From sequence record PQ464595.1: a DNA stretch of 64,000 bases, one strand, 5' to 3'. This document shows, piece after piece, positions 14,682 to 49,036 of the stretch (position 1 is its first letter; each line of letters opens with the position of its first letter). Under the pieces are notes generated by a model that worked only from the letters and a program-made list of their open reading frames with translations, was not told the DNA's origin and made no database searches. Position numbers and translations under genes: made by a program.

Positions 14682-15200
14682 TTACCATTTCAAAAATTCG
14701 TTAACGTCTAAGTCGTATTTAATAGAATCCACCATGTGGAGTTCTATCAGAAACAGACAATAGCTGCTTACAGAACTTCCACGACCTAAACCCCAAAAGA
14801 TATTATGTTCTTTAAGGTAATCTACGAGCCATATCATACAGCGTAGTAGTTTAGTCATGTTATAGCTTTCGTATAAACTTAACTCATACCGTACTCGTTC
14901 ACGTTGAACATCAGTATCGCATAAGTTCAGAAAATAGTCTTCTAGATTGATTTTGTCATAAGCTGGATCATAACGCCATAGTTCATGATTCTTATCATGT
15001 TCTATATTGTAATCAAGCATACGTTCTTCTAATCCGAACTTACGACAGTTATCGTTGAACTTCAATCGTTCAGCTTCATCTTGTTCATTGAGTTGGATAT
15101 AGGTTATATCTGCCCCGCAGTTGATAGCATACACAACTGCGTTCAGATCTAAGCGAACGTCACCATCCTCGCTTATAGTTCGATTTCCTTGTACTTTCAT
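14682..15200 (-). CDS. DNA polymerase III alpha (DnaE)-like, N-terminal fragment
   Basis: R..YEL..Y...LRCMIWLVDYLKEHNIFWGLGRGSSVSSYCLFLIELHMVDSIKYDL corresponds to the DnaE GPGRGSGAGSLVAY.L.IT.LDP...DL motif; the ORF ends immediately after it. Confidence 0.8.
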   Translation of the reverse strand: MKVQGNRTISEDGDVRLDLNAVVYAINCGADITYIQLNEQDEAERLKFNDNCRKFGLEERMLDYNIEHDKNHELWRYDPAYDKINLEDYFLNLCDTDVQRERVRYELSLYESYNMTKLLRCMIWLVDYLKEHNIFWGLGRGSSVSSYCLFLIELHMVDSIKYDLDVNEFLKW

Positions 15201-15471
15201 TCTTCTTGTCTTCAGTTCCAGTGTTAATATAACTGTCCGAATCAAATACAGTTTTGTTGTCTGCTTCTTTCTGTTCAGCTTCTAAGTCAGCTCTCGCTTG
15301 ACGTGTTCGAAGTTCTTCTTCACATGAGCGAATAACAGAGAACATTTGCTGTATAACTTCATATTGTACACCAGCAACCCGTGCTGATGAAATACGCATT
15401 GAGACTTCATTGATTTTATCATAAAGCTCTTGATTACTTAAAGATGAAGAATCAAAAAATGGATGGAACAT
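15160..15471 (-). CDS. Hypothetical coiled-coil protein
   Basis: MFHPFFD..., about 103 aa, overlaps the DnaE fragment start. Confidence 0.7.
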   Translation of the reverse strand: MFHPFFDSSSLSNQELYDKINEVSMRISSARVAGVQYEVIQQMFSVIRSCEEELRTRQARADLEAEQKEADNKTVFDSDSYINTGTEDKKNESTRKSNYKRGW

Positions 15472-15482
15472 ACACATCCCCC

Positions 15483-17852
15483 TTATTGAAATAGATTTGG
15501 CACTTTTAAAGTTGCCGTAAAGTTTTCACGCTCATAGCGAGCATTGTCTTGTACGAAGTAGCTGAATTCTACACCTGAAACTTCGAATTCATAATTCAAC
15601 AACGCACCATGTTCATTATTCTGAATTAGTGTATTGAAGAATGTTTCACCCTGTCCAGGTTGTAAGTACGCGACTACAATTGCTGGGAAATATTCTGCTT
15701 GAATATTATCTTCTACATAAGGATGGTTCATGAAGCGAGGTACAGTATCAATCATCTCGTCGGATAAACCACCGATAGCATCTACTACGATTCCACGGTT
15801 ATTTAGATCCGTTGGGTCAGTTAACAAGTTTACAGTATCTTCACCTACAACGAGGTACACATTCTGACGTAATCCGAAGATTTCAGAAATGATTGAATTA
15901 CTATAATCCGTGTAAACAAGTGGGTTCAAACTAAGGCTTACTTGAGTTCCTTCAGGGTGTACTTCTCTGTACAGTACATCATACAGTACGTTTCCTGCGT
16001 TGTCAAGGGCAGAACGAACCTTATAGTTACCAAGTACTAAACGGAATGAACCATCAGGAGTCGGAGCACCACTGGTTGTGTTAACAATGCCATTACGAAT
16101 GTTAGTAACAGTCTGTTTAATACCAGGCCAGTTCTTAGTTGTATCAACGTAATTCTCTTTCAAAAGAATACGAGGAACTTTACGAACACCGAAGCGTGGG
16201 TCAGACGCACGATAGTACTGAGCTTGACTGAACGCTGTAGTACTGATGGTATTGAACCAAGTACGTTCCATAGTTAATGAGGGTTGAATATCAGCACTGA
16301 TAAAGTTCTGACCGAATCCACGTACAATAGTGATATTGAAACGTTGTGTCAATGATTTACCATTCTTTCCTGTCGCAGTTACATCGAATTCTAACTTAAT
16401 GTCATCGTTCGCTGAGAAATCTGAACTTAAAGCATATGCTGTACCAATCATAAGACCATCAGCACTTAAATCTAAACCGTACTTACGAATATCATTCGGA
16501 GAAGTACTTTCATTTATTTCATAAGTTACAAGGTCTGAACCGCTGGCAACAATCTTAGGATAAACTGTATGTCCGAAATATTCACCAACATGGATTGTAC
16601 CTAAGTTAGCGTCAGTTTCAAATGACAAATCAGTACCGGTATTGTCGTTTAGAATAATGCGGAAGATTCGAGTATTGTTGATAATACCTGAACCTAGAGA
16701 TTCATTATAGATACCTAAATCGTACCATTTATTCGGATCATAAGAAATTACTGTATTACCTTCAAAGGTTTCTTCAGAAACTACATACGGATATGTTGTT
16801 GTATCTCTTAGTTGATATAAATGTGTACTAATAGGTTCTTCATGGAAGTCAGAAGTATCTGTTGGAGCAATCCAAGTTTGATAAGCACGGAAACGTTTAC
16901 CAACAAAGTAAGCATCAGCTTCAGTACTGTAATAACGTTTAACAGAAACTACTCGAATTTTGATATAAGCATCAATTGGGTCGGAATCATACAGCATAGT
17001 TTGAAGAATCTGACCGTTGTTTCCGTTGAATTTTAATCCAGTACTAACAAGGTTTCCTGTACTGTCTTTAACAAGTAGAGGAATTTCTTCAATTAAGCCA
17101 CCGCTCAAATCTGGTACTAGAATTGTTCCTGAGCCAGTAATATTTGTGCTTGGTTTTTCAGAATCAAGAATAGTCAGTACTTCATACGCTGGCATGAATA
17201 CGTTAGTATTACCACCGATGGTTTGACTTTTTCCGAATGCTTGAACGAAAAGGCGACTTTCAGCACCATAACCTACACCACCTATAGTGTACAGGTTAGA
17301 GCCATGTGTTGTCAACCCAGGAGTTAACCAAATTTCGTTTGTGGTGTTATAATTCAAAGTACTTGAAGTTGTTCCGAGAACACCGCTCGGTAGCGTATTT
17401 GCTATTTGACCATCCAACAACGTAATAACGTTGATGCTGTCAATATTAAATGTTAATGATTCTGGTCCATCCCAAATTCCATCTTGTGGACATTCTATCT
17501 TAAAGTAATAAGCATCAATGTAAGATACAGTACTTAAATCATATGAAGTAGTATTGAATTTTACAATGTGTGTACCTTGAGTAGAGGTTGAACCAGTTCC
17601 TGCGTTGCCAATTGGAACTAATGAAGAAGTACTTTCACCTACAGTAACTATAAAATCGCGTTCTTCTAAAGTCTCACCTGCCCCTACAACGTTATAGGTA
17701 AATTCCAAGTACTGGTCATTTTCTAAAACATATGTATCATTGGGTGAAGTTGATTGACTTTTTTTCAAACGTAATCTAAAATACGTGGTTTGTCCTTCTT
17801 GTATTGTATTGGTGTCAGCGATCAAATCCCATTGGGGTTCGAAGTTTGCCAT
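15483..17852 (-). CDS. Large virion structural protein (possibly baseplate)
   Basis: Beta-rich Thr/Gly/Asn composition; ATAAATA late element at 17885-17891; start moved to MANF (GGAG RBS). The function is inferred only. Confidence 0.5.
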   Translation of the reverse strand: MANFEPQWDLIADTNTIQEGQTTYFRLRLKKSQSTSPNDTYVLENDQYLEFTYNVVGAGETLEERDFIVTVGESTSSLVPIGNAGTGSTSTQGTHIVKFNTTSYDLSTVSYIDAYYFKIECPQDGIWDGPESLTFNIDSINVITLLDGQIANTLPSGVLGTTSSTLNYNTTNEIWLTPGLTTHGSNLYTIGGVGYGAESRLFVQAFGKSQTIGGNTNVFMPAYEVLTILDSEKPSTNITGSGTILVPDLSGGLIEEIPLLVKDSTGNLVSTGLKFNGNNGQILQTMLYDSDPIDAYIKIRVVSVKRYYSTEADAYFVGKRFRAYQTWIAPTDTSDFHEEPISTHLYQLRDTTTYPYVVSEETFEGNTVISYDPNKWYDLGIYNESLGSGIINNTRIFRIILNDNTGTDLSFETDANLGTIHVGEYFGHTVYPKIVASGSDLVTYEINESTSPNDIRKYGLDLSADGLMIGTAYALSSDFSANDDIKLEFDVTATGKNGKSLTQRFNITIVRGFGQNFISADIQPSLTMERTWFNTISTTAFSQAQYYRASDPRFGVRKVPRILLKENYVDTTKNWPGIKQTVTNIRNGIVNTTSGAPTPDGSFRLVLGNYKVRSALDNAGNVLYDVLYREVHPEGTQVSLSLNPLVYTDYSNSIISEIFGLRQNVYLVVGEDTVNLLTDPTDLNNRGIVVDAIGGLSDEMIDTVPRFMNHPYVEDNIQAEYFPAIVVAYLQPGQGETFFNTLIQNNEHGALLNYEFEVSGVEFSYFVQDNARYERENFTATLKVPNLFQ

Positions 17853-17910
17853 ATCTAATCTCCAAAACATAAAAAGCTTTGTCGTATTTATTCAATGGCA
17901 TTAATTAAAA

Positions 17911-17934
17911 ATAAAGGACGCCGAAGCGTCCTTA
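17911..17934. terminator. Intrinsic terminator
   Basis: AAAGGACGC-CGAA-GCGTCCTT. Confidence 0.7.
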
Positions 17935-17938
17935 GAAA

Positions 17939-19354
17939 TTATTCAGTATCATCTTTATAGACGATATTCATGTTACGAAGTTCTATGAGTTCTTCTTCAT
18001 AGATTTTCCAAATCTTATCGTGGTTCTGTAGCAAATCACTGTATTCATCCATCTTCGCTAAAGCATCTTCAATTTCTTGATTTACCTTAACGTAGTTTTC
18101 TTTAGTCCAACGATACGCCGCGAAGTTCACGATGTTTTGAATGTTATCATCTGAGGCTTCGATTTCGCCATTCAGAGATGTTACGAAGTCAACAACTTCA
18201 GCACGGTTCTCAAATTCTTTGATCTTTACAGTCATGTCATTATCGAAACATTCTTTAACCAGAATCTTGTAACGCACTTCTGCGTCAGCATCTGCTAGAA
18301 GTTTTTCGTAACGCTTGATGTAGTACTTGAATCGGAACTGAACGAAGTCCTGGATTATTTCCTGAACGTTGCTGTAACTTTTTACTTTTCCGTTTTCACC
18401 TAAAACATTGAGGGTATGTGCCAATTTTGTTGAAATGTCAAAATACTGAAGCACATCCATTTCTGACCATGAAGCCGAAAGACCACGTGGTAGTTTTATG
18501 GTAATGTCAACCTTACCTGAACTGTTATCATCGTAACTACGGATTTTACCTGAATCTTCCATTGCGATCAAGTCCTCAACGAACTTTTCCAGTTTCATAC
18601 GTGGAGCTAGACCAGTAATACGAACAGTACTTGCGTCAATTACTTCTGCTTTTCCGAAGAAAGTATACTTACCTTCGCCACGGTCTTCAACATAATCGTT
18701 CGCACCATAACTTGCGTAGTACGGCATCATTTCTAAAAGTTCTTCACCACGGATAGCACGGAGAGTGTTCTCGATGATTTCGTTCATACGATATGGGAAG
18801 ATAAAACTTTTATACGCTGTAGCAGTACCATCAACACCAAGTAGTGCTAGTGGAACAATTGGTAGGAAGAACTTAGGTTCCATTGTCGTACCGTCATAAT
18901 TTTCTTGCATCGGTACAACATCCATATCACGAAGTACTAAAGCTTCAGTGAGTTTGGTTTTCTTCACGTATGTATAACGTGGGCTTGCTGGTTCAGGATT
19001 AACCTGTGTACCGAAACCACCACGCTTACCGATAAGTGGATAGTTGTTCACAACTGGACTTGCTAGGTTCTGTAGTGTACCACTAGCAGAAGCATCACCA
19101 TGAAGGTAGATACCGTCACTAATCATACGACCAGCACAAGATACAGTTTTGATTTCACCACTTACTTTACTCAGTGTGAAGATAGCTTTACGCTGTGAGT
19201 TTTTGAAACCATCAATCCCAGGTAGAGCACGATCAAATGTACTCAAAGCATATTCTAGGGATGATTGGTTGATATAGTCTGAGCTACCATAGCCTAACAG
19301 AGTTAGAGCATTAGGTACAATCTCAGCTTGGGTTTTCTTTGTTGATTTACGCAT
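17939..19354 (-). CDS. gp52: Type II DNA topoisomerase, GyrA/ParC-like breakage-reunion subunit (T4 gp52-like)
   Basis: RALPGIDGFKNSQRK, YLHGDAS, catalytic ASPRYT; no C-terminal beta-pinwheel. Confidence 0.93.
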   Translation of the reverse strand: MRKSTKKTQAEIVPNALTLLGYGSSDYINQSSLEYALSTFDRALPGIDGFKNSQRKAIFTLSKVSGEIKTVSCAGRMISDGIYLHGDASASGTLQNLASPVVNNYPLIGKRGGFGTQVNPEPASPRYTYVKKTKLTEALVLRDMDVVPMQENYDGTTMEPKFFLPIVPLALLGVDGTATAYKSFIFPYRMNEIIENTLRAIRGEELLEMMPYYASYGANDYVEDRGEGKYTFFGKAEVIDASTVRITGLAPRMKLEKFVEDLIAMEDSGKIRSYDDNSSGKVDITIKLPRGLSASWSEMDVLQYFDISTKLAHTLNVLGENGKVKSYSNVQEIIQDFVQFRFKYYIKRYEKLLADADAEVRYKILVKECFDNDMTVKIKEFENRAEVVDFVTSLNGEIEASDDNIQNIVNFAAYRWTKENYVKVNQEIEDALAKMDEYSDLLQNHDKIWKIYEEELIELRNMNIVYKDDTE

Positions 19355-19403
19355 TTCCTTTGCCTCTTTGCTAATACGGGGAACTCCTGTTCCCCACTAA
19401 TAA

Positions 19404-21392
19404 TTATGCTTCTTCTACTTCGCGAGTCCAATCTTTACGGTCATCAGCACGTTCTTTGTTGAAGATCAAATCTAGGGTTTCTCCTAGTGAACCATCATCA
19501 GTAATCGCAACTGCTACACCATTAGATAAAGCATCACGGAAGTTTGTTACTTCAAGAGTACCAAGACCTTTCGCACGTGTTGCTTTCCATCCTTTCCATT
19601 CTTCGGGATTATATTCATGGACGTTGTGACCATAGAAGTACTTCGATTCTTTACCTTTCTCAAGGATGATGAACGGAGTTTTGAAGATATAGATGAATGG
19701 GTCTTCTGGATCAGCGAATAACTCAGGCCAGAATTTATAGAAGAAGTTCACCACAAGAGCACCGATGTTCTTACCATCTTCATCTTCATCAGCACAAATG
19801 TATAACTTGCCGAAGTTCATATTAGCACGAACGGCACGTTCACCTGGAATTAGATTTAGTGATGCCATAATGTCATGTATCGCTGAAGGTTTATCAGCAG
19901 TACCCATTAGGTCTTTAGTCTTCTCTTTACCGTTTACGTTCTGGATTTTACCACGTAGTGGAAGAATACCATGAATCTCGGAGTTCCTAGCAGCAGTCAT
20001 TGAAGATACTGCGGAATCACCTTCTGCGATTAGTAGAATACATTTAGAACGATCAGTACCATTAGCATCACGCAATTTAGCAACTTTACCTTTCAGTAAA
20101 CGTTTAGCCATCTTACGATCTTCATCGGCATCTTTCTTGTTTGTACGTTCAGCACAACGAGTATAAATTTCTTCAACCCAATCGTTATTTTTCTTAACGA
20201 GTTCAGCGAAGAATTCATCAGTCATTGCGTTCTGTACTGGTTTAATGACATTCTCATTAGTTAGCTTCGTTTTGATCTGAGAGTTGAATGTTGGAGTATT
20301 CATCTTAGTGACGTTATAAATCAACAAACCTTCTTCAATATCAGAACGGTTAGGGGTCATTTTCTTTTGCTTAGATTTACGTTCTAGGGCTTTAATAACG
20401 CCTAGTGCGAACTTCTGTTGGAAGGTATCTAAGTGAGTACCACCTTCGAGGGAGGGTGCGTTGTTAACAAGACCTTGCATATGTAGGTTCTTGCTAAGTC
20501 CACCAACTACACCAGGGACAATATAGAAAGTACTGTCAAAGCCAGTTGTACCGTCTTCAACTTTCAATGTCATAGTGTTTTTGTGAGCCGAGAATAGACC
20601 TTTCTTAGCGACAACAATACGTTCACCGTTCAAGAAAATCTTGTACGATGGATTTGCTGCTGCGATTTCTTTCAGAATACTAAACACGAGTTCAAGAGGT
20701 AAAGTATGTACTTTAAACACTTCTTTACTGATTTTGAATCGTACTGTAGTACCAGTCTTCTCTGCCTGTACTTTACGAATACTTGGTTCATTAATTCCAA
20801 GTTCAGGGAACATTGCTGTACCTTCAGTGAACTTCTGAGTGAATTTATATGTACCTTCGTATTCAGAGTTGGCTTTATCGGTTTTGTACGGCTTACCCGC
20901 ACGATGAATTTCGAGTTCAGCTTTCTCAGATACGATCATAACCACTGAACCGCCTAAGCCGTTCATCCCGATAACGTTAGTACGTTCATCATCGTTAAAG
21001 TTACGTCCAGTTTTCATTTCGGTTAGAACCATAGTACACACGTGTTTCTGTGTTTCTGGTACATAGTCGATTGGAATACCACGACCGTTATCGCTAATTT
21101 CGAATTCTAATTCATCTTGATTGTACTGGACTTTCAGTACTGGATCTTTAGTTCCAGCTTTTACGAATTCATCCAGTGAGTTATCCACGATTTCGCGGAA
21201 AGATGTTAGTAGGGCAGGAACCCAACCTAAGTTTTGCACGTTGAAACCTTCTTCTCCAAAGAGAAGTACAGGTTGTTCATGTTCTGATTTCGAACCCAAA
21301 TACATTTCAGTACGGATACGAGCATGTTGATATTCAGTTAATTGCTGTACCCCATGTTCAGCGAGAACAGAACTTTTCTTTTCCTTTGCCAT
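19404..21392 (-). CDS. gp39: Type II DNA topoisomerase, GyrB/ParE-like ATPase+TOPRIM subunit (T4 gp39+gp60 in one chain)
   Basis: EIVDNSLDE, DNGRGIP, GMNGLG, EGDSA, PLRGK, DEDEDG, KGLG; start moved to MAKEK (21392). Confidence 0.93.
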   Translation of the reverse strand: MAKEKKSSVLAEHGVQQLTEYQHARIRTEMYLGSKSEHEQPVLLFGEEGFNVQNLGWVPALLTSFREIVDNSLDEFVKAGTKDPVLKVQYNQDELEFEISDNGRGIPIDYVPETQKHVCTMVLTEMKTGRNFNDDERTNVIGMNGLGGSVVMIVSEKAELEIHRAGKPYKTDKANSEYEGTYKFTQKFTEGTAMFPELGINEPSIRKVQAEKTGTTVRFKISKEVFKVHTLPLELVFSILKEIAAANPSYKIFLNGERIVVAKKGLFSAHKNTMTLKVEDGTTGFDSTFYIVPGVVGGLSKNLHMQGLVNNAPSLEGGTHLDTFQQKFALGVIKALERKSKQKKMTPNRSDIEEGLLIYNVTKMNTPTFNSQIKTKLTNENVIKPVQNAMTDEFFAELVKKNNDWVEEIYTRCAERTNKKDADEDRKMAKRLLKGKVAKLRDANGTDRSKCILLIAEGDSAVSSMTAARNSEIHGILPLRGKIQNVNGKEKTKDLMGTADKPSAIHDIMASLNLIPGERAVRANMNFGKLYICADEDEDGKNIGALVVNFFYKFWPELFADPEDPFIYIFKTPFIILEKGKESKYFYGHNVHEYNPEEWKGWKATRAKGLGTLEVTNFRDALSNGVAVAITDDGSLGETLDLIFNKERADDRKDWTREVEEA

Positions 21393-21486
21393 TTCAAATT
21401 CCTTTTTGTTTCTTAGCCATTGCATTATAGCATAAATTGTTTCTTTGTTCCAAAAAAATAACGACGCATCTCTGCGTCGTTAGTAT

Positions 21487-21858
21487 TTATAGTAGAACCA
21501 ATATAGCGATTATCACGTAGTGTGTCAAGTGGTGAGCCATCTGGTCGATACCTAAGTACCACCAGAATTGAGGCTTACTGTGATCAGTACTGCGAGAAGC
21601 TTCGACTTTGACTTTATCGACAATAAAGTGTATTCCAAAATCAAGTAGTGCGACTGCTATCATAATCTGAAGCGAAGCACCAGCACACAAAGCTATCAAT
21701 AACGTACCTAAAAAGTGCGTTCCAGCATGTGCGGTTAGTGGTAGTTCCCACCCTTCTTCTTTGAATTTACCTAGCATGTAACGACCCTGGAAGAAGTAAT
21801 CACATAGTAGATGTTTAATTTGGTACACGAATAGTAAGATAAAAATCGTGGTTATCAT
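21487..21858 (-). CDS. DUF3307-like membrane protein
   Basis: H.L.DY.FQ, H..TH, HF.VD..K and DQ..H motifs; hydrophobic. Confidence 0.7.
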   Translation of the reverse strand: MITTIFILLFVYQIKHLLCDYFFQGRYMLGKFKEEGWELPLTAHAGTHFLGTLLIALCAGASLQIMIAVALLDFGIHFIVDKVKVEASRSTDHSKPQFWWYLGIDQMAHHLTHYVIIAILVLL

Positions 21859-21867
21859 ATTTTGCCT

Positions 21868-24317
21868 TTATTTGACTAGTAATAGTTGGAACTGCGATTG
21901 AGGCGAATCTTCTTCATCACTCCAGTACTTGTGGAATTTCTCTGGTGTAGCAGCTTGTAGTACTTCACCATTAGCAACCACATATACTTTATGTGACTGA
22001 ATCAGTCTTTGCCAGAATTTAATGGCATCATCGGATTGTAGGCGTCCACTTAGAATTGGAGTACCTTCAACTTTAATAATGTCCATGAACATCTGATAAA
22101 CTACACCTTTAACCGACCGGCTAGAGGCTGTTACATCGACGTTAAACCATCCTTCATCCACATGACCATTAACTGAAGCAATTGCTTCTCCAGTATCATT
22201 GTCATATGCCATGTATCCATCTTTCCCACGGTAAGTTGTCCACTCACCATGATCTTTAACTGGAGTCATGTTTTTTGGTGTATTAGTTTTTGCTTGCTTA
22301 TCTACGTACACTTGTGGGTCCATTCCCATAAACGAATCATATTTAAGTGGCATTTCTTCTAGAACACCTTTGTTAATTAGTTCTTGATCTTCAGCATCAT
22401 CCATATCATGTTCTAGTTCAGCATTTTGTACAATGTCTGCTAGACCACGCATACTTGATTCTGCCATAGCTGCTTCACCACGTTCTTTGCGTTTAGCAGT
22501 ACGCTCTACATAATAAGCAAGTGATTCATCAAAATCAGCAATAGATTCTGAGTACTGTAATGCTTTGTTTATGTGCCGTGGTTCAACTTCTGAATTGTAA
22601 TATGCGTCAAAGACCTTAGTGAAGAATTCTTCGATTTCTTTTTCTGAACCGATGAAATCATTTTCACCATCATCAATATCAACAGTATACATTTTTCCTG
22701 ACGTTTGGCAAACAATTTTTGCTTTTACATCTGCCATTTGGACAAGGAAAAATCCTTCGTCTTGAATATAATCATCAAATTGAACTCTACGTGAATTGTC
22801 ATGGTTCAAGAATCCAGAGTTTTCATTGATATTCTCAACTGCGAATAGCATACCTTCTAGATTAGCATCAGGTGCGTTTTCTTTTTCAACCATATCTTGT
22901 AGAGCATTAATTCCACGCATGTTACCAAGATAATTGACAGGTAATTTAGCCATTTGTTCTTTGGTAAAATCAATACGAAGTTGCTCACCACCATCAGGTT
23001 TAACAAGAATGAAATAATCATCACGGTGTCCGTGACGGAAGACTATATCATATGGTGTATATCCACCTTCAACACGTAATGTGAATTGTTCTGGATCATG
23101 TTTTTTGCTCAATCCATGAATCTTTGGTTGTTCACCAAATTCTTGCCATACTTTCAAGTATAAATCACCCATTAAGCTATCGCCTGGTGCTGGGTATTCT
23201 TGATCACGTTCAAATTCATGACCATCATCAATATTCTTTTCAGTACTGTCAAATTCGTGATTATCTTCAGCATTTAGTTCATTATCATAGAAGTTACTAA
23301 CTTCACGATAAATCAATTTCATTGCCTTATTAGCACGAGCATCTTCTTTATACTTACGAAGTTCTTTTACTAGATTCGCTTGTGGATATGATCTTAAAAC
23401 ATGTTGAATAGCTTTAGAAATATCTGCATTCTTATTACCAGTTATTGAATCTGGATTTTCCTCAAGCCATTCATTAGCGAAATTCGCTAAATCTTTTACT
23501 TGTGGTCCAAATTCAATACCACCACGATAATACGCATCCGGGTCTTTTCCAGAAATATAATCAGGATGCTGATGGGTTTGTTGGTCTTTTGGATTTAAAT
23601 TTCTATTAACTACCTGTTGAATAGTATGTTGAAGTTCATGCTCAACTGTACCAATAGCATAATTAAGAGAACGAGCAACACCATCTAGGGTAGTATTCTT
23701 AATATCTTGATAAGACGGAATACCTAAATCTAACTCATTTTGAGTTCCACGAACAGCACTGCTTCCACCTTTATGAAGGAACTGATTACTCATTTTCATC
23801 TTGATTGTAAGACTATTAATAAGTTCTTTGGTGCGTGGATTCTTTTTCAAATTTTCAGGTAATGAATTATAAATTTCATCAGGATCAATATTCAAATGGG
23901 TACTGCTATTGATATATTTCTTCAAATCATCAGGTGATAGTACTGAAGCACCATACTTACGTTGAAATCTACGCAAGAAATTCATTAGTGCTTCAGCAGC
24001 TTCAGTTTTATGTTGATTAACAAGTTCATGTTGTTTCATCACACCCATAGTTAGAAGTACTGAACCAACATATTTTTGAACTTGTTTCAGTAGTGTTTGC
24101 GGTACTTTAATAATACCAACACCACTTGCTTCATCAAGTTCAACTTCTTCTGATACATGAGATGGAAGGTCAGAACCCTTCTTAAGATTCCCATCCTTCT
24201 CGTCAGCTTTATTAAAATCGTGAGCAACACTTTGGTCGATACCTGCGTCTCTAGCAATATCTGGATTGTGAGCAGCGGCAGCCATTAAATGTGCCTGAGC
24301 TTTGCTTTTACTTGGCA

Positions 24318-40898: not shown

Positions 40899-41549
40899 TT
40901 ATTTTAGGATCTTCAGAACCTTAGCGATTTTATTTTCGTTTTCAGAAAGCCATTGGTTCATTTCTTTCTTAGAGTTAAAGTACTTATTACCTACAGTACC
41001 TTTAACGCTTTCTAGTTGAATACCAATACGCTTAGGTTTAGCAGATTCCTTCATCTCACGATCCATTGGAGTTGGTTCTGGTAGATCACCAGCATCACCC
41101 AAATCAGCATCGTCTTCGAAGTCGAAATCACCTTCTGGAGTATCTACATCTAGAGATACATCATCAGTTCCAAAATCATCTGCACCTAGATCAGAAACAT
41201 CAGGAGACGCAGTAATGTCACCAGTTAGTTTTAGAGTTTCAGTACTGATTTTGTCTTTAACATCCATAATAGTTTTAACAGCATGATCTAGAAGACCACT
41301 GATGTTATTACGGAATGATTCGGCTGCTTCAAGGCCATGTTCAGCTTTAATACGGTCTAGTAGTGGACCTAGTACGTCAACACCCATGTTGTTGATTACT
41401 TCAGCTTGACGTTGTAGCTTATCTACGATTTCACCCTTAACTGCTAGTACAATTTCAGCTTTCTCAATATTTGATTCATTAAGTTGAACAAAATTTAAAG
41501 CTTCAACGCGACTGCCGGATTCCATCATTTTTTGAAATTGTTTTGACAT
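40899..41549 (-). CDS. Acidic hypothetical protein, probable prohead core/scaffold
   Basis: MME|S, LNE|S and MKE|S motifs; D-rich linker; TAAATA at 41582-41587. Confidence 0.55.
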   Translation of the reverse strand: MSKQFQKMMESGSRVEALNFVQLNESNIEKAEIVLAVKGEIVDKLQRQAEVINNMGVDVLGPLLDRIKAEHGLEAAESFRNNISGLLDHAVKTIMDVKDKISTETLKLTGDITASPDVSDLGADDFGTDDVSLDVDTPEGDFDFEDDADLGDAGDLPEPTPMDREMKESAKPKRIGIQLESVKGTVGNKYFNSKKEMNQWLSENENKIAKVLKILK

Positions 41550-41580
41550 TGTTATTTCCTTATAAATGAAATTTATATCC

Positions 41581-42390
41581 TTATTTAGTTATGAATCCTT
41601 CTTCTTTTAAGAAGTTCAATACTCTTGCTTTCAAGTCTTGGGCTTTTTTCTTGTGTTCAGCAATAACTGTATCAAGTTCCTGAGCCTTGTCATACTTAGA
41701 TTCTTTAAGTACGTTTTGACGTTCTTTGGCAGCTTTAATAGCTTCCTTAACGACATTAGTGTATTGAATACCAGAACTAATGATACCAAGTACTTTAGTA
41801 TCAGTTAAGGTTCTACCAGCGTTTAGAAGATTACGTAGTGCTAAAGCTGATTCATACATCATAATATTGTCTAAAACAACCTGATTGGTTGCTAAACATT
41901 TTATGCTGTACGTTTTAGCATTCTTCATACCAAGTACCGATTCTTCAATAATACCCCAATTCATTCCTGGAACATATGGGCGATTTTGTTGTACTGGTGC
42001 TTGTTGAGATTGCTGTTGTTGTGTTTGAGGTTTTACTTGACGCATACGAACAGCGATAGGATCTTCTATAAAATCCTCACCTGCTTGCGGTTCATAATAA
42101 CCATAAATGCTATCATAATCATTATCAGAATCTACATTAACGTATTCCTGACCATAAAATGATTCTTCTTGAATATTACCATATTCTCCGGTCAGTTCTT
42201 GTAGACCGTTTAAAAGATTCTTTGTTTCAGCAAGATTAACTTGAGCAAAGTCATTCACAAAAGTACTACCATCTGGTAATTTCTTCTGTACTGGCTTTCC
42301 TTCTTCAATGTCATCGAATGCTGAAAGAATATCTCCCATTAGATCAACACCGTGTTTATGGTGTTCGAAATTTCCGAAATCATCACTCAT
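41581..42390 (-). CDS. Hypothetical protein (head cluster)
   Basis: 269 aa, poly-Q linker, helical C-terminus. Confidence 0.65.
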   Translation of the reverse strand: MSDDFGNFEHHKHGVDLMGDILSAFDDIEEGKPVQKKLPDGSTFVNDFAQVNLAETKNLLNGLQELTGEYGNIQEESFYGQEYVNVDSDNDYDSIYGYYEPQAGEDFIEDPIAVRMRQVKPQTQQQQSQQAPVQQNRPYVPGMNWGIIEESVLGMKNAKTYSIKCLATNQVVLDNIMMYESALALRNLLNAGRTLTDTKVLGIISSGIQYTNVVKEAIKAAKERQNVLKESKYDKAQELDTVIAEHKKKAQDLKARVLNFLKEEGFITK

Positions 42391-42605
42391 TGCTTACTCC
42401 TTTTAATTGATACAAAATATTCAGTTCCGTCTTTATCTACCTTATTTAGAATTCCACGAGAGACGAGTTTATCACCCATCTCTTGATAGTATTCGCCAAA
42501 GTACTCAACTGGCATCTCAACATTTGCGTCAATTTTCTTAATGAGACGGTATTCTTCATTTGATACAATTATGGTAAAACCTTTATTTGTACCGACCGAT
42601 CTCAT
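42387..42605 (-). CDS. Small hypothetical protein, possibly winged-helix
   Basis: 72 aa, ...LVSRGILNK... Confidence 0.6.
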   Translation of the reverse strand: MRSVGTNKGFTIIVSNEEYRLIKKIDANVEMPVEYFGEYYQEMGDKLVSRGILNKVDKDGTEYFVSIKRSKQ

Positions 42606-43531
42606 TATCTTCCTCTCATTCTTGAACAGAAGTCGATAATCTGAGAAAGAACTTCATCAGCATTATGCATACCTTCGTTACCTTGTGGTGATTCTTCACC
42701 AGTGGTATCTTCTGAACCTTCAATATCACCAATTGCTTGTGATAGTCTACCTAAACTTGGATTCTCATGAGTTAGTGGAGAAGATTGTTGTTCAATACTT
42801 CTTTGTTGTTCTGGAGCCATGATAGCACCTTCACTGTTATCCACTTCATCGTGTTCATCATCTTCCTGAACCGGTTCAATGTCATTTAGACCAAATACGT
42901 TTACTTGGTTGGCTTTTGATGGATCTTTGGTAACTACTAGACTTTTATCTGGAGTTGGACCAATATCCACACCAACAACGTTAGCGAGTTCAGTACTACC
43001 AGCTTGGTTCCCAGGAACAGATACTTTAAAATTCGTGTTCGACGCATTACGTTGTAAATCCGCTTGCTTCATTTTAATAGCAGTTTGTGGATTCACCTGT
43101 GATTGCTGTTGAGCAGTGTTTTGTTTATTGATTTGGTTCGCATTCATTTGTGAAGTAATATCTTCATTCAATTCATCGAATACCAAAGTTTTGATTTCAG
43201 CTAGTGTTAGGTGAGAGTTCTCACGCAACGCAAAAGCACAATTTGCTCTATAGAATTCTTCCAGTTCTGTAACTGTAAGCTTGTTCAATGCGTTCACTTC
43301 TGCTGACTCATTAATTTTGTTCGAAGCGAAAAGTTTATAATTCTCGCTCATTTGTGCTTTGTACTTTTGTAGTACTTGCATGATAGCTCGGTTGTCTGAG
43401 TTATCCATTGCTTGGTTGATTTCTACAAAATCACCAGCATCCATAGCATTCAGGGCTTGGTTTACATCCATTTGTAAGCCATTCGCATCTGCGAACTTTT
43501 GAAGCTCTTGTGCGGTTTGTTGTATATCCAT
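42605..43531 (-). CDS. Acidic Q/N-rich hypothetical protein, probable head core
   Basis: INE|S and LNE|D motifs; ATAAATA at 43571-43577. Confidence 0.6.
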   Translation of the reverse strand: MDIQQTAQELQKFADANGLQMDVNQALNAMDAGDFVEINQAMDNSDNRAIMQVLQKYKAQMSENYKLFASNKINESAEVNALNKLTVTELEEFYRANCAFALRENSHLTLAEIKTLVFDELNEDITSQMNANQINKQNTAQQQSQVNPQTAIKMKQADLQRNASNTNFKVSVPGNQAGSTELANVVGVDIGPTPDKSLVVTKDPSKANQVNVFGLNDIEPVQEDDEHDEVDNSEGAIMAPEQQRSIEQQSSPLTHENPSLGRLSQAIGDIEGSEDTTGEESPQGNEGMHNADEVLSQIIDFCSRMRGR

Positions 43532-43576
43532 ATTATCTCCAAAAAGAAAAACCTTTTCTGTACATGAAGATATTTA

Positions 43577-43975
43577 TCATGTACGGGAAAAGGTTTGCTT
43601 AGTAATGCTAATATTCCGTTCAGAGGTAGTACTGTTGAATTTTGTTAGACGTGCACCATTAACTGTAGTTGGTAGTACTAGAGGTACACCACTTACCGAT
43701 AATTCCACATCCATTGGCAATGCGAATTTGAAAGTACTCACGACACATTCTCCCCATGCACTGGGAAGATTGTAAAATGATGAATTGTTGTTCTTACTCA
43801 AGTCAACTTCAGTTTTAACAACACTCACCATCATTGGCCTATCGAATACCATAACACATTCCAGCAATCTTGACAAATTCATCGCACCAGTAAATTCTCC
43901 ATTCACAATTGTTGGAGTACTACCATCACCAATGTCGATTACAGTGTTGATTGTGTAAAATGTATAAGAAGTCAT
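43577..43975 (-). CDS. Hypothetical late protein
   Basis: 132 aa, in the late cluster. Confidence 0.65.
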   Translation of the reverse strand: MTSYTFYTINTVIDIGDGSTPTIVNGEFTGAMNLSRLLECVMVFDRPMMVSVVKTEVDLSKNNNSSFYNLPSAWGECVVSTFKFALPMDVELSVSGVPLVLPTTVNGARLTKFNSTTSERNISITKQTFSRT

Positions 43976-43976
43976 G

Positions 43977-44132
43977 TTAATCCTTTTTGCCTTTATATTC
44001 TTTGTATCCGAAGAAATTCGATTTAGGCATTCTTGTAATTAGTGGATAATTAAGCCCACCGCTTACAGATGCGATTGAACCAGAACTGGTAGCACCGGAA
44101 GAAGCATTTTCGTTTACTTTTTTCTTTTTCAT
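43977..44132 (-). CDS. Small protein, 51 aa, not in the ORF track
   Basis: MKKKKVNENASSGATSSGSIASVSGGLNYPLITRMPKSNFFGYKEYKGKKD; fills the gap exactly between its neighbours. Confidence 0.7.
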   Translation of the reverse strand: MKKKKVNENASSGATSSGSIASVSGGLNYPLITRMPKSNFFGYKEYKGKKD

Positions 44133-44133
44133 A

Positions 44134-44403
44134 TTATTCACCTTTGTTCTTACGTTTTTCGTCCAAGGTCAGATTCTCTAAACCCTTTTCGAACTTACGA
44201 TAGTCTCGGTTCTTAATACTCAAGAACAAACGTCTAGTGAGATCGTTTGCTACTTCTTCATCAAAATCCTCGTCAATACTATCTAGTAGATTGATTATCG
44301 AATTTATTGCGTGATCAGCACGATTTCCTAAACTTTGAAGTTTTTCTTTGTCCGAAGTATAGTTTACTATACTATCCAGAAGATTGTGCTTTTTATTCGA
44401 CAT
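44134..44403 (-). CDS. Hypothetical helical protein
   Basis: Start moved to MSNKK; TATAAATA at 44464-44471 inside the helicase 3' end. Confidence 0.7.
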   Translation of the reverse strand: MSNKKHNLLDSIVNYTSDKEKLQSLGNRADHAINSIINLLDSIDEDFDEEVANDLTRRLFLSIKNRDYRKFEKGLENLTLDEKRKNKGE

Positions 44404-44404
44404 A

Positions 44405-45907
44405 TTACATCCTACCATTCAAAAAGTTTCGCATACTAGAAACTTTATCCTCAGCCTTTGGTGTATTTATATCTTGGGATTCAGTAGTACTGTGATTTTG
44501 TACATCATTTGTACTAGATTTATGGGTAACTGTAGTCAATTTATTCTGTAGAGAACTCATAGCACCGCCTGGAGCTTGTGGAGTACTGAATACGTTACTT
44601 TTACCGATCATTACCTTGCCGCTGTGTTTGAATCCGGTATTAATTTCCATTTCCTGAACAGTGTTAGGGTGATCTAGTACTCGAAGTGAGTCAATATCAT
44701 AAGACATGATCAAACGAGAACCTACGGCTGAACTGTTACGTGTTTTCTGGAAATCCAGAACCATTTCACCGCGATCTTTACGAGCGTCGATGTAAATTAC
44801 GTTATCAGCAGTATAAATCTTAGAAATACCACCCGCAATCTGTGCTTGAGATTTAACATCTTCTCCAGCAACACCACTACGGTTGAACTGACAAGCTGTG
44901 AATACAGTTAGATCCATTTTCATAGCTAGAGCACGAAGTTCTTCTGATACGAACTTATCCTTAACGAACGCATTTGACTTATCGTTTGGACCACAACGGT
45001 CTGATGTTAATAGATCGAGATAGTCTACACAAACGTAGTCTAGTTTTACGCCAGTTTTGATTTGAAGTTCACGAATATAACTTTCAATGTCGTTGACAGT
45101 ACTAACAGATTCAGGTAAACGATGAATACGTAATTTACCGTTACTGCGTTCCTCAATTTTGACCTTAGCAGCAGTTTCATCAATGTCAACTTTGACTTTG
45201 TTCTGTGCTGTGTTAACCATCATACCATAGATACGAACAGCAACTAATTCAGATGCTAGTTCTAATGTGATGTAAGCACCATTAAGTCCAGCTTTACTGA
45301 AGTTCACGGCTAAGTTTTGGAGAACAACTGACTTACCACCACCAGACGCAGCAGCAAAGATTTCTAATTCTTGCTTGCCGAATCCACCAAATAGTTTATA
45401 GTCAAAAGTTTCCCAACCAGATTTGAATGTACCTTGTTGTTCTGCCAATTTACGAATAACCGATTCTGGATCTTCATAAATGTCTAGACCAATATCATTC
45501 TGTACTGTTACTAACATAGCTTCACGAATGAGTTCTTCGATTCCACCGTAACGTTTTTGGTTCACAAGTTCCATACCTTGCTGAATAGCTTGGGCTAGAG
45601 CTTTATGACGACAAAATTCTCCGATACTGTCCAGTACTGCCTGTTGATTCAACTCAGGAACTGTAGTTTCAGAGTACGAGAAATCCGCATTGTGTTTAAT
45701 GTCATTCAGTGTTGGAGTAACATTGTACTTTGATGAATAATCATGTACATATTGAATGCTTGAGTGATATTCCTTATCGAAATAATCAGGCTTCAAAACA
45801 TTCTTACATCGAACATATAAGTCCGGTGTACTAAAAATTTGCTGTAGCAAATATAATTGATATTGAATATCGTATTTTCTAACGTCCGTGTTGTTACTTA
45901 CTGCCAT
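44405..45907 (-). CDS. gp41: Replicative DnaB-family helicase (T4 gp41-like)
   Basis: AASGGGKS, YITLEL, VDYLDLL, TACQFNRSG, KTRNS. Confidence 0.92.
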   Translation of the reverse strand: MAVSNNTDVRKYDIQYQLYLLQQIFSTPDLYVRCKNVLKPDYFDKEYHSSIQYVHDYSSKYNVTPTLNDIKHNADFSYSETTVPELNQQAVLDSIGEFCRHKALAQAIQQGMELVNQKRYGGIEELIREAMLVTVQNDIGLDIYEDPESVIRKLAEQQGTFKSGWETFDYKLFGGFGKQELEIFAAASGGGKSVVLQNLAVNFSKAGLNGAYITLELASELVAVRIYGMMVNTAQNKVKVDIDETAAKVKIEERSNGKLRIHRLPESVSTVNDIESYIRELQIKTGVKLDYVCVDYLDLLTSDRCGPNDKSNAFVKDKFVSEELRALAMKMDLTVFTACQFNRSGVAGEDVKSQAQIAGGISKIYTADNVIYIDARKDRGEMVLDFQKTRNSSAVGSRLIMSYDIDSLRVLDHPNTVQEMEINTGFKHSGKVMIGKSNVFSTPQAPGGAMSSLQNKLTTVTHKSSTNDVQNHSTTESQDINTPKAEDKVSSMRNFLNGRM

Positions 45908-45914
45908 TTAAACC

Positions 45915-46961
45915 TCAAATCCATTTTTCAGTTTGTACTCTTATGTCGAATCTGTCTGTGTATATGCTCTTATGAAGAAGTTGTAAACAGAACAACCTTC
46001 CATACTTAGCACATGCTTCATCAAAATCCTTAATGTGACGGATTCCCTCTCCATCACGAACAGCCCCGAAGTCAGGTAGTGCTACACTGAATCCGTGCTC
46101 AATAGCTTGTTCAATTGTAACTAGACCATCTTTATCACGGTCTGGTACTATCACTATCATTTTACCACGTTCCTGAGCTTTCTTCAACAATTCAATCTGT
46201 GAAGTACTAAGGAAGTAGTTATTAGCAGAAATTCCACCCATTAACGCTGCGTCAATTGGCCCTTCTGCTACCAGGATTGTTTGCATCCTGTCATCATTTA
46301 GCAAATCGAAGTTATAAAAAATGCTCGTACTCACTTGGTTCCGATAACGATATTCGCTATCTTTGTCAATGTGACGAGCAGTGTAACCTATAATTTGTCC
46401 ATTCATGTAATACGGAATGATGAACCGTTGGAACATGTAAAACTCTTTTGATGGACTCCAGTACAGATTCAAGTCCAACAGATACGGATTACGTTCATTG
46501 ACTGCGTTAACTACTTTCAAAAATTCAGGTGGAATATTCGGAGAATTCACCCAATCAAGGAAAGGTTTAGCGTCAGAAGGTAATTCACGCTGTACTATTT
46601 TCTGGTACAGTTTTGATGCCGCAGTATCTTGTACTTCGTAATCACCACTTTCTACCATCTCTTTTGCGATTAGCTTTATGCTAATCATTTCTTTATCTGA
46701 CGCACCATATGAACGAAGCAAGGATTCCATATCCTTGCTTACATATCTTCCAGGTGTCCAGACTGTTTTTAGGTGACAGTTAAAACAGTTATACACGACA
46801 GAACCATCATTACGGAACATGTGATTTCCACGTCCTTTAGTATCAGGTCTTGATTGCCCTCGTGTAACACAAGCAGGGCAATTGTGTTGATTCCAGCGAT
46901 CCATCATTGGTGCTGGATCGTGCATAATTGATGCCATAATGTCTTGTATCTGATTCATCAT
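45915..46961 (-). CDS. DNA primase (Zn ribbon plus TOPRIM; T4 gp61-like)
   Basis: CPAC...CFNC, RFIIP, GYTAR, VAEGPIDA, PDRDKDG, KDFDE; adjacent to the helicase. Confidence 0.8.
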   Translation of the reverse strand: MMNQIQDIMASIMHDPAPMMDRWNQHNCPACVTRGQSRPDTKGRGNHMFRNDGSVVYNCFNCHLKTVWTPGRYVSKDMESLLRSYGASDKEMISIKLIAKEMVESGDYEVQDTAASKLYQKIVQRELPSDAKPFLDWVNSPNIPPEFLKVVNAVNERNPYLLDLNLYWSPSKEFYMFQRFIIPYYMNGQIIGYTARHIDKDSEYRYRNQVSTSIFYNFDLLNDDRMQTILVAEGPIDAALMGGISANNYFLSTSQIELLKKAQERGKMIVIVPDRDKDGLVTIEQAIEHGFSVALPDFGAVRDGEGIRHIKDFDEACAKYGRLFCLQLLHKSIYTDRFDIRVQTEKWI

Positions 46962-47023
46962 TCATTTCCTATGTCTGTGTCAGTACTTCGATCATTATAC
47001 CACATTTTTACAAGTCATTCCAT

Positions 47024-47995
47024 TTATCTGCGAATCAGAATCTTAGGGATTGTGTTCAACGGATTGTAATCTTTCTTGATTACATTAGGTGGATAATTCT
47101 TAACAATCGGCGGGATAGCAGCTACTACACGAACCCACATAAGCTGTCCGTGGAAGTTAAATGCTCTTATTCCTTCCAATGGAATTGGAATACCATTTGG
47201 ATCAAAATCACTCTCAATGTATTCTTTACCATCAAGTTTAATGATGAACCACTTATAGTCTTCAGCATCCTTTGGCGTCTCGTTAGCAAGACAACCCTGT
47301 AGTTGAACTCTACCAATGAAATTATTGAAGTAAAATGCGATAGTACTTAAACCATCTACTAAACCATACTGAGCATCAGCACGGATTGCGGAACTATGCA
47401 ATACGTCGAATTCACCAATAATACCATTAGAGATAGGCTTTTGTTCCTTGTCTTTAATTGGTAGATATGATGGATTCTTATCTTTACTGATTTCTTGACT
47501 CGGTGTAAATGTTGGAGCAGCTAGATTACTGATAGTTAGTTCAGCACTAGCTTCATAGTTCAATCCAGTATACAAGTACTCTGTCGGTTCAATTAGATCC
47601 CCATCCATTGTAACTTTAGTAATACTCCAGCGGTATTTTGAACCAACACTTAGATCTTGTATAACTCCAGCAGGAACCATACAACCATAGTAGACTTTAA
47701 CTTTATTACTAACAGTTGGTCGTGCTTGTCCAGCTTCAGATACCCATGAAGGTATTTGCTTGTCAAGCACTGTTTCGAAGATTCTGGTATCCGAACGAGC
47801 ATCATAGATACTGAATACCAGATATTGATTATCACTAATCAATGTATATTTTCCATCAGCATTATGAATAGTAAAGCTAAGTGGATTGTTTGCACCTCTA
47901 TAAATGGTTAGTTTCTGTTGAGAGAATGGCATATTAAAATTGCCCAAAGAAACTTCATTGTTATAAGGATACATGTAAACGCCATGATGTGCCAT
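47024..47995 (-). CDS. Probable virion structural protein
   Basis: Beta-rich; ATAAATA on the minus strand at 48033-48039; start ATG 47995 with GAGG. Confidence 0.5.
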   Translation of the reverse strand: MAHHGVYMYPYNNEVSLGNFNMPFSQQKLTIYRGANNPLSFTIHNADGKYTLISDNQYLVFSIYDARSDTRIFETVLDKQIPSWVSEAGQARPTVSNKVKVYYGCMVPAGVIQDLSVGSKYRWSITKVTMDGDLIEPTEYLYTGLNYEASAELTISNLAAPTFTPSQEISKDKNPSYLPIKDKEQKPISNGIIGEFDVLHSSAIRADAQYGLVDGLSTIAFYFNNFIGRVQLQGCLANETPKDAEDYKWFIIKLDGKEYIESDFDPNGIPIPLEGIRAFNFHGQLMWVRVVAAIPPIVKNYPPNVIKKDYNPLNTIPKILIRR

Positions 47996-48048
47996 GTTCA
48001 ACCTCGATAAATATTATATACAATTTATACAATATTTATGGAAGTCCT

Positions 48049-48402
48049 ATGAATGAATATAAAACATATCCGTTCGTGACCATCATTGAACACGACGATA
48101 TAATCTATTATGGGATTATCAAAATCAAAAGTAAACAATACATTACATTGTACTGCTTCTCTGAGATGGATGAATCCCTTCAAGAAGAACTGCTATTACT
48201 GGCTAATAACTGGTGGTGGCAAAGTAATCGAACCATTCCTATTTGCTTATTCATGCAAGAAGAAATGGAAAAATTTGAACCATACACCAAACGATTTAAC
48301 ACTGACCAAGTGAAAGTTCATAGCGGTCCAGTTATATCTTTAAGTGATCTACCTACTAAACGTATTAAACGTCGAAATGTTGCTCTTAAGAAGAGGAAGT
48401 AA
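48049..48402 (+). CDS. Hypothetical protein with a basic C-terminus
   Basis: Start moved to MNEYK; plus-strand ATAAATA at 48007-48013. Confidence 0.65.
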   Translation: MNEYKTYPFVTIIEHDDIIYYGIIKIKSKQYITLYCFSEMDESLQEELLLLANNWWWQSNRTIPICLFMQEEMEKFEPYTKRFNTDQVKVHSGPVISLSDLPTKRIKRRNVALKKRK

Positions 48403-49036
48403 TATACTCAACTAGAGCGTTTAATTGAACAACAATCATCAAACTATAAGCGTATGCATGAGGCTTCTTGAAGTATCTTAACTTCCGACCTTCAGCATCA
48501 AGACCAATACTCTCATAATCCCAAATCACTGCCCTTACTTCATCCCAACTATTCATACTCTGACATTGACGCTTGCCTGGACGAATCATAGCAATAAACA
48601 TTGCCAATTCATCTATATTTTTAGGCTTCCAGATATGTAGCAACGTAATGTGCTTCTTAATCTGCGATAGTTCTTCTACGAATTCCGGTACTAATAATAG
48701 ATCCCAATCTGGCTCTTTGTTCATTAACTCCTTCAAATGATCCCTATCACGAACATGCTCATAAGCCGACTGAGAAAGAATATCAACTTTTTGGTATCCT
48801 AATCTTTCGGCTTCTTTGTATTGTATGCTTGCTAATCCACTAATTGGATCTACGGGTATATTATCGAAGTGAACACCACTATTGTGAGGGATCAAACCAT
48901 CTTCAGTAATCTTCTCAATACTTCTAGTACAAGGAAGTTGCTCAATCACTGACTTTCCATCTTTAAAGTCAATATCAATATCAGTTCGAGCTTTACGGTA
49001 ATTAATAGTTTGAGAACTCTTGTGATCCGTATCCAT
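48386..49036 (-). CDS. DNA polymerase III alpha (DnaE)-like catalytic palm fragment
   Basis: TDIDIDF (two catalytic Asp), HNSGV, LGYQKVDIL (third Asp), LAMFIAMIRPG, FKKPHAYAY, all in DnaE order. Confidence 0.85.
   Translation of the reverse strand: MDTDHKSSQTINYRKARTDIDIDFKDGKSVIEQLPCTRSIEKITEDGLIPHNSGVHFDNIPVDPISGLASIQYKEAERLGYQKVDILSQSAYEHVRDRDHLKELMNKEPDWDLLLVPEFVEELSQIKKHITLLHIWKPKNIDELAMFIAMIRPGKRQCQSMNSWDEVRAVIWDYESIGLDAEGRKLRYFKKPHAYAYSLMIVVQLNALVEYITSSS

Follow-up and report, generated by a model that had tools for sequence, protein, structure and literature searches.

Two distant genes of Erwinia phage Kaldavass encode the halves of a minimal polymerase III alpha-type core

Can two short genes that lie far apart in a phage genome together specify one polymerase core of the bacterial replicase type? 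The question was raised by a stretch of 64,000 nucleotides, called the window below, which was matched to positions 124001-188000 of record PQ464595.1 (100% identity), Erwinia phage Kaldavass. The phage is a 366,556-bp Rak2/CBB-like myovirus placed by its describers in the "group 2.2" jumbo phages (PMC11780129). A reading of the window from its letters alone had picked out two open reading frames (ORFs), here genes A and B, as intein-free halves of one minimal DnaE-type (C-family) core of fewer than 400 amino acids. Both were confirmed on the minus strand, at 14682-15200 (gene A, 172 amino acids, N-terminal half) and 48386-49036 (gene B, 216 amino acids, C-terminal half); they total 388 amino acids, with 33,185 bp between the genes. 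That the two are halves of one core was borne out by natural fusions, a structural model resembling C-family polymerases only, conserved residues, the ratio of non-synonymous to synonymous substitution rates (dN/dS) and co-distribution. The novelty claimed for the split did not hold, as a split minimal DNA polymerase III (Pol III) alpha had been described in group 2.2 jumbo phages by Iyer, Anantharaman, Krishnan, Burroughs and Aravind (2021, Viruses 13:63; PMC7824862). The split mini Pol III is a correct rediscovery of an arrangement known since 2021.

Gene A matched Pfam family PF07733 (DNA_pol3_alpha) at E 6.4e-9, which exceeds the curated cut-off, and PHROGs family phrog_11127 at E 1.3e-84. 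When its family was aligned with the DnaE profile using hhalign (probability 94%, E 8.7e-8), residues 97-172 corresponded to residues 319-394 of E. coli DnaE. Residues 1-96 of the protein form an N-terminal domain specific to the family, after which come palm helices bearing the GRGS motif, located by translation at residues 139-142 (14775-14786); its counterpart in E. coli DnaE is the nucleotide-binding turn GRGS 361-364. GRGS was invariant in the A family, and among members down to 32% identity the strings WG.GRGSSVSSY and the C-terminal KYDLD..EFLK were invariant or nearly so. The protein does not stop right after GRGS, as had been stated, and runs on for 30 residues, past the next helix, to the equivalent of DnaE residue 395. 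Residues 1-96 gave no sequence match to DnaE or PHP, and a search of the ESM Atlas returned only the protein's own family.

Gene B is too diverged for Pfam detection, where the signal was a weak match to the finger domain (E 0.056), and was assigned using PHROGs (phrog_11778, E 1e-106), hhalign and an AlphaFold2 model. Translation placed DIDIDF at residues 19-24, with D19, D21 and D23 on the DxD strand (DIDID at 48968-48982), KVD with the third catalytic Asp at residues 83-85 (48782-48790), RPG at residues 152-154 (48575-48583) and FKKPHA, which includes the putative steric-gate His193, at residues 189-194 (48455-48472). These and GRGS of A make up the full set of motifs that had been listed. 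By hhalign, K83 and D85 were aligned with K553 and D555 of E. coli DnaE and RPG with RPG 639-641. Taken with the structural alignment, D19, D21 and D85 correspond to the catalytic residues D401, D403 and D555, the published active site of DnaE (PMC8485763). The AlphaFold model of B (predicted local distance difference test score, pLDDT, 90.9) matched Pol III alpha chains only when compared using VIA-align (Z 9.8 for Taq, 8.5 for E. coli; next unrelated chain Z 2.3), and its residues 15-215 superposed on residues 399-784 of E. coli DnaE.

The loss of catalytic Asp residues among homologues, as decay would bring, was not seen: D19, D21 and D85 were invariant in a 31-member alignment of the B family, as were K83 and P153, and D23, R152, K190 and H193 were conserved in at least 90% of members. 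Among 132 B representatives DxDxD was found in 124 and KxD in 131. The finger domain is present in reduced form, with R152-P-G and K191-P-H193. In E. coli the His of the K-x-H motif, H760, is the proposed steric gate and is invariant in Pol III alpha (PMC8485763). The equivalent His was found in most of the 132 B representatives, which argues for the use of deoxynucleoside triphosphates (dNTPs) and makes priming, one of the roles first suggested, unlikely as such; primer extension or repair may be the roles that remain. PHROGs and the GenBank record label both A and B 'DNA polymerase'. Several GenBank entries for homologues of B (CBB_287; GAP32 and pEa_SNUABM phages) read 'putative membrane protein' or 'hypothetical protein', so that the second half of the enzyme is often missed. 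The homologue of A in phage CBB, CBB_328, was noted as a 'truncated' Pol III alpha in the description of that phage (PMC5259590).

With A ending at the equivalent of DnaE residue 395 and B beginning at about 399, the break is in the short surface loop that leads from the GRGS helix to the D401/D403 strand, and falls inside the minimal Pol-beta-type nucleotidyltransferase fold. A-family ORFs always stop 0-8 residues past EFLK and B-family proteins begin a median of 3 residues ahead of the DxD motif, which leaves no room for split-intein halves; no intein or Hint domain was matched in A or B using Pfam, and the absence of inteins at the junction was thereby upheld. The remaining parts of DnaE were also sought. 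Just 27 residues (one helix) separate DIDIDF of B from the next strand, too few for a thumb, and about 200 residues of B span E. coli DnaE 399-784. The protein stops at about E. coli residue 784, before the clamp-binding/HhH, OB and tail regions. In agreement with the sequence-only reading, Pfam gave no PHP (PF02811), clamp-binding/HhH or OB match in A or B, and none to the C-terminal tail. There was no PF02811 match in candidate phosphoesterases and no PHP-like ORF genome-wide, nor was any clamp-binding/HhH, OB-fold or tail ORF found in the genome scan. When E. coli DnaE, two PHP-plus-palm proteins and two A-B fusions were used as queries against the 3262 six-frame ORFs of the whole genome, only A and B matched, all others scoring E 0.5 or higher; further DnaE fragments were not found, within the sensitivity of single-sequence and Pfam searches.

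Evidence that A and B are parts of one fold was obtained from natural fusions, which are rare. A phmmer search of 1.84 billion representatives with B as the query gave 262 clusters at 50% identity, nearly all of 185-215 amino acids and starting at DxD. Two of the clusters were longer proteins. In P0187 (375 amino acids) a sequence matching A (35% identity, E 4e-26) is linked to B by 10 residues; it has close relatives of 376 amino acids (P0252 and P0253), and all three clusters came from ENA and Logan assemblies. P0198 (336 amino acids) has only the C-terminal part of A in front of B and is without the N-terminal domain. All four fusions keep the order of DnaE and are collinear across the cut, and in P0187 the Pfam PF07733 match spans the A-B junction (E 4.8e-16). 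No further fused forms were found: P0198 is a singleton in the databases, and a metagenome scan with P0187 returned ordinary DnaE genes only. The P0198 gene lies on an 8-kb unclassified contig (JGI 3300080032; L087:1516-4181, including the neighbouring replicase gene), where it overlaps by 4 nt the end (stop codon) of a 552-amino-acid gene for an archaeo-eukaryotic primase (AEP)-type 'Replicase' (PF03090) with a helix-turn-helix; the two genes may form a primase-polymerase module of a small replicon.

P0187 was modelled using AlphaFold2 from a joint alignment of fusion, A and B rows anchored by the four fusions, in which the B rows are still out of register over their first few residues. The model is one compact body (pLDDT 92.4, predicted template modelling score 0.90) with low confidence in the linker only. 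Foldseek returned 19 significant matches in the PDB, all of them C-family polymerases. With VIA-align the Z scores were 22.0 for M. tuberculosis DnaE1, 20.4 for Taq Pol III alpha, 17.6 for PolC and 15.5 for E. coli, and 335-348 of the 375 residues were aligned to C-family chains, the fingers up to residue 773-830. The next fold was the CCA-adding enzyme (Z 3.4-3.7, model residues 103-278). In most DnaE chains the stretch matched to P0187 begins at residues 9-15, and in PolC at 344-346, positions that we take to be the start of the PHP domain. Residues 1-96 of A might on this model be a PHP vestige, which would point to reduction and not to a primitive state. A cluster in the AlphaFold DB (A0A0J9W6V7, an uncharacterised protein of 344 amino acids) matched residues 139-363 of the fused model (E 5e-9, 19% identity) and may be another short C-family-like protein outside the phage family.

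The order of events was examined using a quick maximum-likelihood tree of 133 B domains, midpoint-rooted. The P0187 clade was nested in a supported clade of stand-alone B proteins, and P0198, on a long branch, fell in another clade of stand-alone proteins. As the fusions are nested in this way, the tree suggests that they are secondary and that the split state is ancestral for the phage family.

Both genes are under strong purifying selection, and pseudogene decay is excluded. When Kaldavass was compared with XbC2 or CBB, dN/dS was 0.036-0.037 for A and 0.026-0.040 for B. Catalytic and nucleotide-binding residues were invariant or nearly so, though the mean column identity of the families was 30-42%. 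Of 50,697 phage records searched, 94 gave a match to A and 96 a match to B, and the counts by genus were almost the same for both; one of the 94 matches to A was the full-length DnaE of a Bacillus phage. Identities of A and of B to the Kaldavass proteins were paired over 18 phages with r = 0.98, the points being non-independent. In ten isolates compared the distance between A and B was 14-44 kb. In IMG/VR, A was found in at least 587 loci and B in at least 589. Among 185,579 species genomes six loci with a B homologue were found, all on contigs of metagenome-assembled genomes (Gammaproteobacteria, Neomarinimicrobiota, Crocinitomicaceae and an uncultured bin; up to 335 kb). These six contigs are probably jumbo-phage DNA binned with bacteria, and the A/B family is essentially phage-restricted.

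The genes lie in a genome equipped for T4-type replication and recombination. Clamp loader, topoisomerase II, Dda, RNase H, DnaB-like helicase, primase, UvsX, UvsY and SSB genes were found in the window; gene B is grouped with UvsX, UvsY, helicase, primase and DnaB, and gene A with clamp loader and topoisomerase. A separate family B polymerase, which it had been proposed to look for, was found elsewhere in the genome, 3.2 kb past the end of the window; it is complete (1009 amino acids), with polymerase and exonuclease domains (PF00136 and PF03104).

On this evidence A and B would probably form a two-subunit, template-directed accessory DNA polymerase core of the C-family, each supplying what the other lacks. 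From A would come the N-terminal domain peculiar to the family, together with the palm helices that bear the GRGS turn for nucleotide binding; B would supply the DxD strand with two Asp residues, the third Asp and the cut-down finger domain, in which RPG and K-x-H would hold the incoming nucleotide. All of the residues for nucleotidyl transfer and triphosphate binding are retained in the alignments of A and B. Since the cut is inside the Pol-beta-type core, neither half should be active alone, and since there is no intein the halves would have to assemble non-covalently. The assembled enzyme, of about 45 kDa, would use dNTPs. Within the T4-type machinery of replication and recombination it would assist the family B replicase, for example in the extension of primers or of recombination intermediates. 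Physical association of A and B is what we infer from the evidence as a whole, and DNA polymerase activity and a cellular role are predicted on the same footing.

Several points weigh against a two-subunit accessory polymerase. In the literature no biochemical or genetic report was found for any member of the family. The phage already has the complete family B polymerase with its exonuclease domain, and the need for a second is not evident. Obligate partners are usually encoded side by side; when the 80 best IMG/VR loci for each half (160 loci) were examined, B was never found closer than 10 kb in the A set, nor A closer than 3 kb in the B set, and the positive controls of the test (the window and two fusion loci) worked. 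The P0187 model is of a single chain and is no test of heterodimer formation. The mini enzyme would have to grip primer-template and gain processivity without thumb, HhH/beta-binding, OB and PHP domains. The steric-gate His of B was assigned from motif alignment and not from residue-level superposition, and the residue preceding it, P192 (48461-48463), is Pro in this enterobacterial lineage; among other B representatives the equivalent position is Ser in 82, Ala in 27 and Gly in 4. Substitutions at the E. coli equivalent, S759, alter base and sugar selectivity (PMC8485763).

The alternative that survives best, though we consider it unlikely, is that A and B together form a nucleotidyltransferase and not a templated polymerase, such as a terminal transferase or tailing enzyme or a synthase of nucleotide signals. 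In its favour, A and B lack the thumb and every known module for binding duplex DNA, their Pol-beta core taken alone is similar to CCA-adding enzymes (Z 3.7), and the phage has many NAD and nucleotide-conflict genes. However, the C-family finger motifs (RPG, and K-x-H with the steric-gate His) are under strong selection, the 335-348 residues that superpose on DnaE include the fingers, and the context is one of replication and recombination, with one fused form paired with a Rep/primase-type gene. It is clearly less probable again that the halves act separately and share no active site, A being for example a nucleotide-binding regulator and B an inactive replisome scaffold. Such a division of labour would suit genes that are always far apart, in different conserved neighbourhoods and possibly in different transcription units, but it is hard to reconcile with a cut within the minimal catalytic fold that leaves each half an incomplete domain, with fusions that arose at least twice, or with the near-identical distribution, equal evolutionary rates and invariant Asp triad.

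The view that A and B belong to a conventional DnaE, made whole by additional fragments or by protein splicing, is refuted within the sensitivity of the searches. Precedents for division exist, in the cyanobacterial split DnaE rejoined by split inteins and in one unrelated metagenome contig on which a PHP-only ORF lies beside a polymerase ORF. Against them stand the lack of any Hint or intein domain, of room for intein halves, of another DnaE-like ORF and of PHP, and the natural fusions, which are themselves only 336-376 amino acids. The contig (OKRZ01000398.1, L181:8366-12382) appears to carry an otherwise ordinary DnaE-type polymerase in which a PHP ORF (382 amino acids) is followed by a polymerase ORF (933 amino acids), a different kind of split from that of A and B. 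Decaying remnants of a captured dnaE, as the small size of the pieces and the first description of CBB_328 as 'truncated' (PMC5259590) might suggest, are refuted by dN/dS of 0.03-0.04, by ORF ends fixed across more than 580 environmental loci per half and by 262 B clusters at 50% identity with conserved motifs.

Each half occupies its own conserved neighbourhood. Directly downstream of A is a 119-amino-acid gene (14279-14638, minus strand; phrog_14844, E 8.6e-57 over its full length) that adjoins A in 74 of 76 environmental A loci. Its product, with a conserved first 60 residues and an acidic tail, is 85% identical to CBB_329 and related to EST35_0289 of PA5oct. The GenBank record is without this gene, and has instead a coding sequence of 33 amino acids (14553-14654) and a GroES-like coding sequence (13948-14379); the latter seems to start too far upstream and so to overlap the 119-amino-acid gene. 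A GroES-like gene was found near A in 70 of the 76 loci. About 1.1 kb downstream of A lies the large subunit of the clamp loader (gp44-like; 12652-13605, minus strand; Pfam DNA_pol3_delta2, AAA and Gp44_lid), and a clamp loader was present within 10 kb of A in 60 of the 76.

Upstream of B, in the same direction, is a gene for a 239-amino-acid protein with an N-terminal C2H2-like zinc finger (49358-50077, minus strand; phrog_11058). It was found near B in 73 of 80 environmental B loci, and its family is phage-only in the ESM Atlas; the PA5oct protein EST35_0219 (27% identity, E 9e-38) is likewise encoded upstream of B. A convergent ORF of 117 amino acids (48049-48402, plus strand; phrog_11637), which shares its last 17 nt with the 3' end of B, was present in 71 of the 80 loci and also adjoins the fused gene in locus L086, and a 325-amino-acid protein was encoded near B in 69. 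The primosome module, annotated in GenBank as a DnaB-like helicase (44405-45907, minus strand; DnaB_C E 2.9e-16) and a primase (45915-46961, minus strand), sits two genes downstream of B; PA5oct keeps the same order, and a primase lay within 3 kb of B in 52 of the 80 loci. By synteny the phrog_14844 and phrog_11058 proteins are candidate partners of the two halves. The 235-amino-acid genes upstream of A and of B in PA5oct were compared as possible paralogues, as a split by duplication would have them, and are unrelated.

Transcription signals were sought by consensus. The T4-type late promoter TATAAATA was matched 5 times in the window against 5.9 expected by chance, and not near A or B. Scans for sigma-70 and terminator consensus gave weak leads. 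A strong sigma-70-like promoter match on the minus strand at 14664-14693 (TTGAAA, 18 nt, TG-TATAAT; 11/12) overlaps the stop of A just upstream of the 119-amino-acid gene and, as a consensus match only, suggests that gene A ends a transcription unit.

A DnaQ/ExoX-like 3'-5' exonuclease gene (53421-54296, minus strand; 291 amino acids; Pfam RNase_T, E 4.9e-17) had been put forward as a possible proofreader for the pair. A dedicated role of this kind was not specifically supported, for the gene is more widely distributed and diverges faster than A and B. It was found in 122 phage records, including small Pseudomonas phages without a match to A or B, and in 2 Xanthomonas phage records as against 4 for A and B; its identity to the 121Q copy was 51%, against 79-83% for A and B. 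A part in base modification, another early suggestion, found no backing either, as no hypermodification has been reported for Kaldavass (PMC11780129). Its DNA shows GATC and CCWGG motif methylation and an unidentified TGCAT signal, and three phage methyltransferases are predicted (PMC11780129).

A more elaborate scheme can be drawn for the group 2.2 jumbo phages, although we hold it to be speculative and rather unlikely. The replisome would contain two polymerases, the mini Pol III extending primers or displacement loops in the manner of Pol alpha or B. subtilis DnaE and then handing over to the family B replicase. With one half in the clamp-loader cluster and the other in the primosome and recombination cluster, the pair would behave as an AND gate, active only when both modules are expressed, and the phrog_11058 and phrog_14844 proteins would be DNA-binding or clamp-tethering helpers.

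Other features were recorded in passing. No tRNA genes or Rfam families were found within the 64-kb window. Outside it, at 59.8-112.9 kb of the Kaldavass record, is a tRNA island with 34 annotated tRNA genes, including a suppressor, and small ORFs interspersed among them. Two adjacent genes in the window are annotated 'terminase large subunit' (60254-60943 and 58603-60252, both minus strand). The gene of 549 amino acids has both ATPase and nuclease domains; in the upstream gene of 229 amino acids the TerL N-terminal ATPase was matched only weakly, below threshold (E 9.5e-4).

An active pair would be smaller than any C-family polymerase known so far, about one third of the size of DnaE, and its catalytic fold is naturally divided between two chains. 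Such an enzyme would show which parts Pol III-type catalysis needs at the least, and would offer a natural two-piece polymerase for use in engineering. It would also mean that two unrelated polymerases are used by T4-like jumbo phages of a large, widespread group, for which more than 580 environmental loci were found with each half. It would bear as well on whether a core of this kind gave rise to the bacterial replicase or was reached by reduction in the phages.

Among known systems, the CCA-adding enzyme, which has a Pol-beta fold, shares with A and B the core of helix and GS turn, DxD strand and third carboxylate, but it is far more distant in structure (Z 3.4-3.7 against 22 to DnaE), and the finger motifs of the phage proteins are those of the C-family. 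With DnaE and PolC the phage enzyme shares the Pol-beta-type palm with its GS turn, the Asp triad, the finger RPG and the K-S-H steric-gate motif. Unlike them it is about one third of the size, is made of two polypeptides, is not the main replicase of its genome and is without the thumb, the beta-clamp-binding/HhH region, the OB fold and the tau-binding tail; by sequence there is also no PHP. In cyanobacteria the halves of split DnaE are rejoined covalently by the DnaE split intein. There, as in Kaldavass, a C-family polymerase comes from two distant genes, but the cyanobacterial exteins make up a full-length enzyme, whereas A and B have no intein, are cut inside the catalytic core and total 388 amino acids. 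The DnaE of B. subtilis is a second, primer-extending polymerase beside PolC, and is a full-length single chain. By analogy the phage pair may likewise be a C-family accessory to another replicase, encoded near primosome genes.

The closest comparison is with the split Pol III alpha of Iyer et al. (2021; PMC7824862). In their account the N-terminal part is NTP-binding and the C-terminal part binds Mg2+ and template, the two being encoded by distant genes in T4-like jumbo phages whose genomes also code for a family B polymerase but for none of the remaining Pol III domains; the role suggested was repair or the synthesis of one strand, and the mini enzyme was viewed as a model of an ancestral polymerase (PMC7824862). 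Kaldavass agrees in each of the defining respects, with two stand-alone proteins from distant genes, a T4-like jumbo genome, a family B polymerase and no other DnaE parts. A and B belong to the same family, with no difference in kind. What is added here to the earlier description is the natural fusions, a confident three-dimensional model (Z 22 to DnaE), the mapping of residues on the E. coli enzyme, the dN/dS values, the environmental scale of the family, the non-adjacency of the halves in 160 loci with separate conserved neighbourhoods, and a tree in which the split seems older than the fusions.

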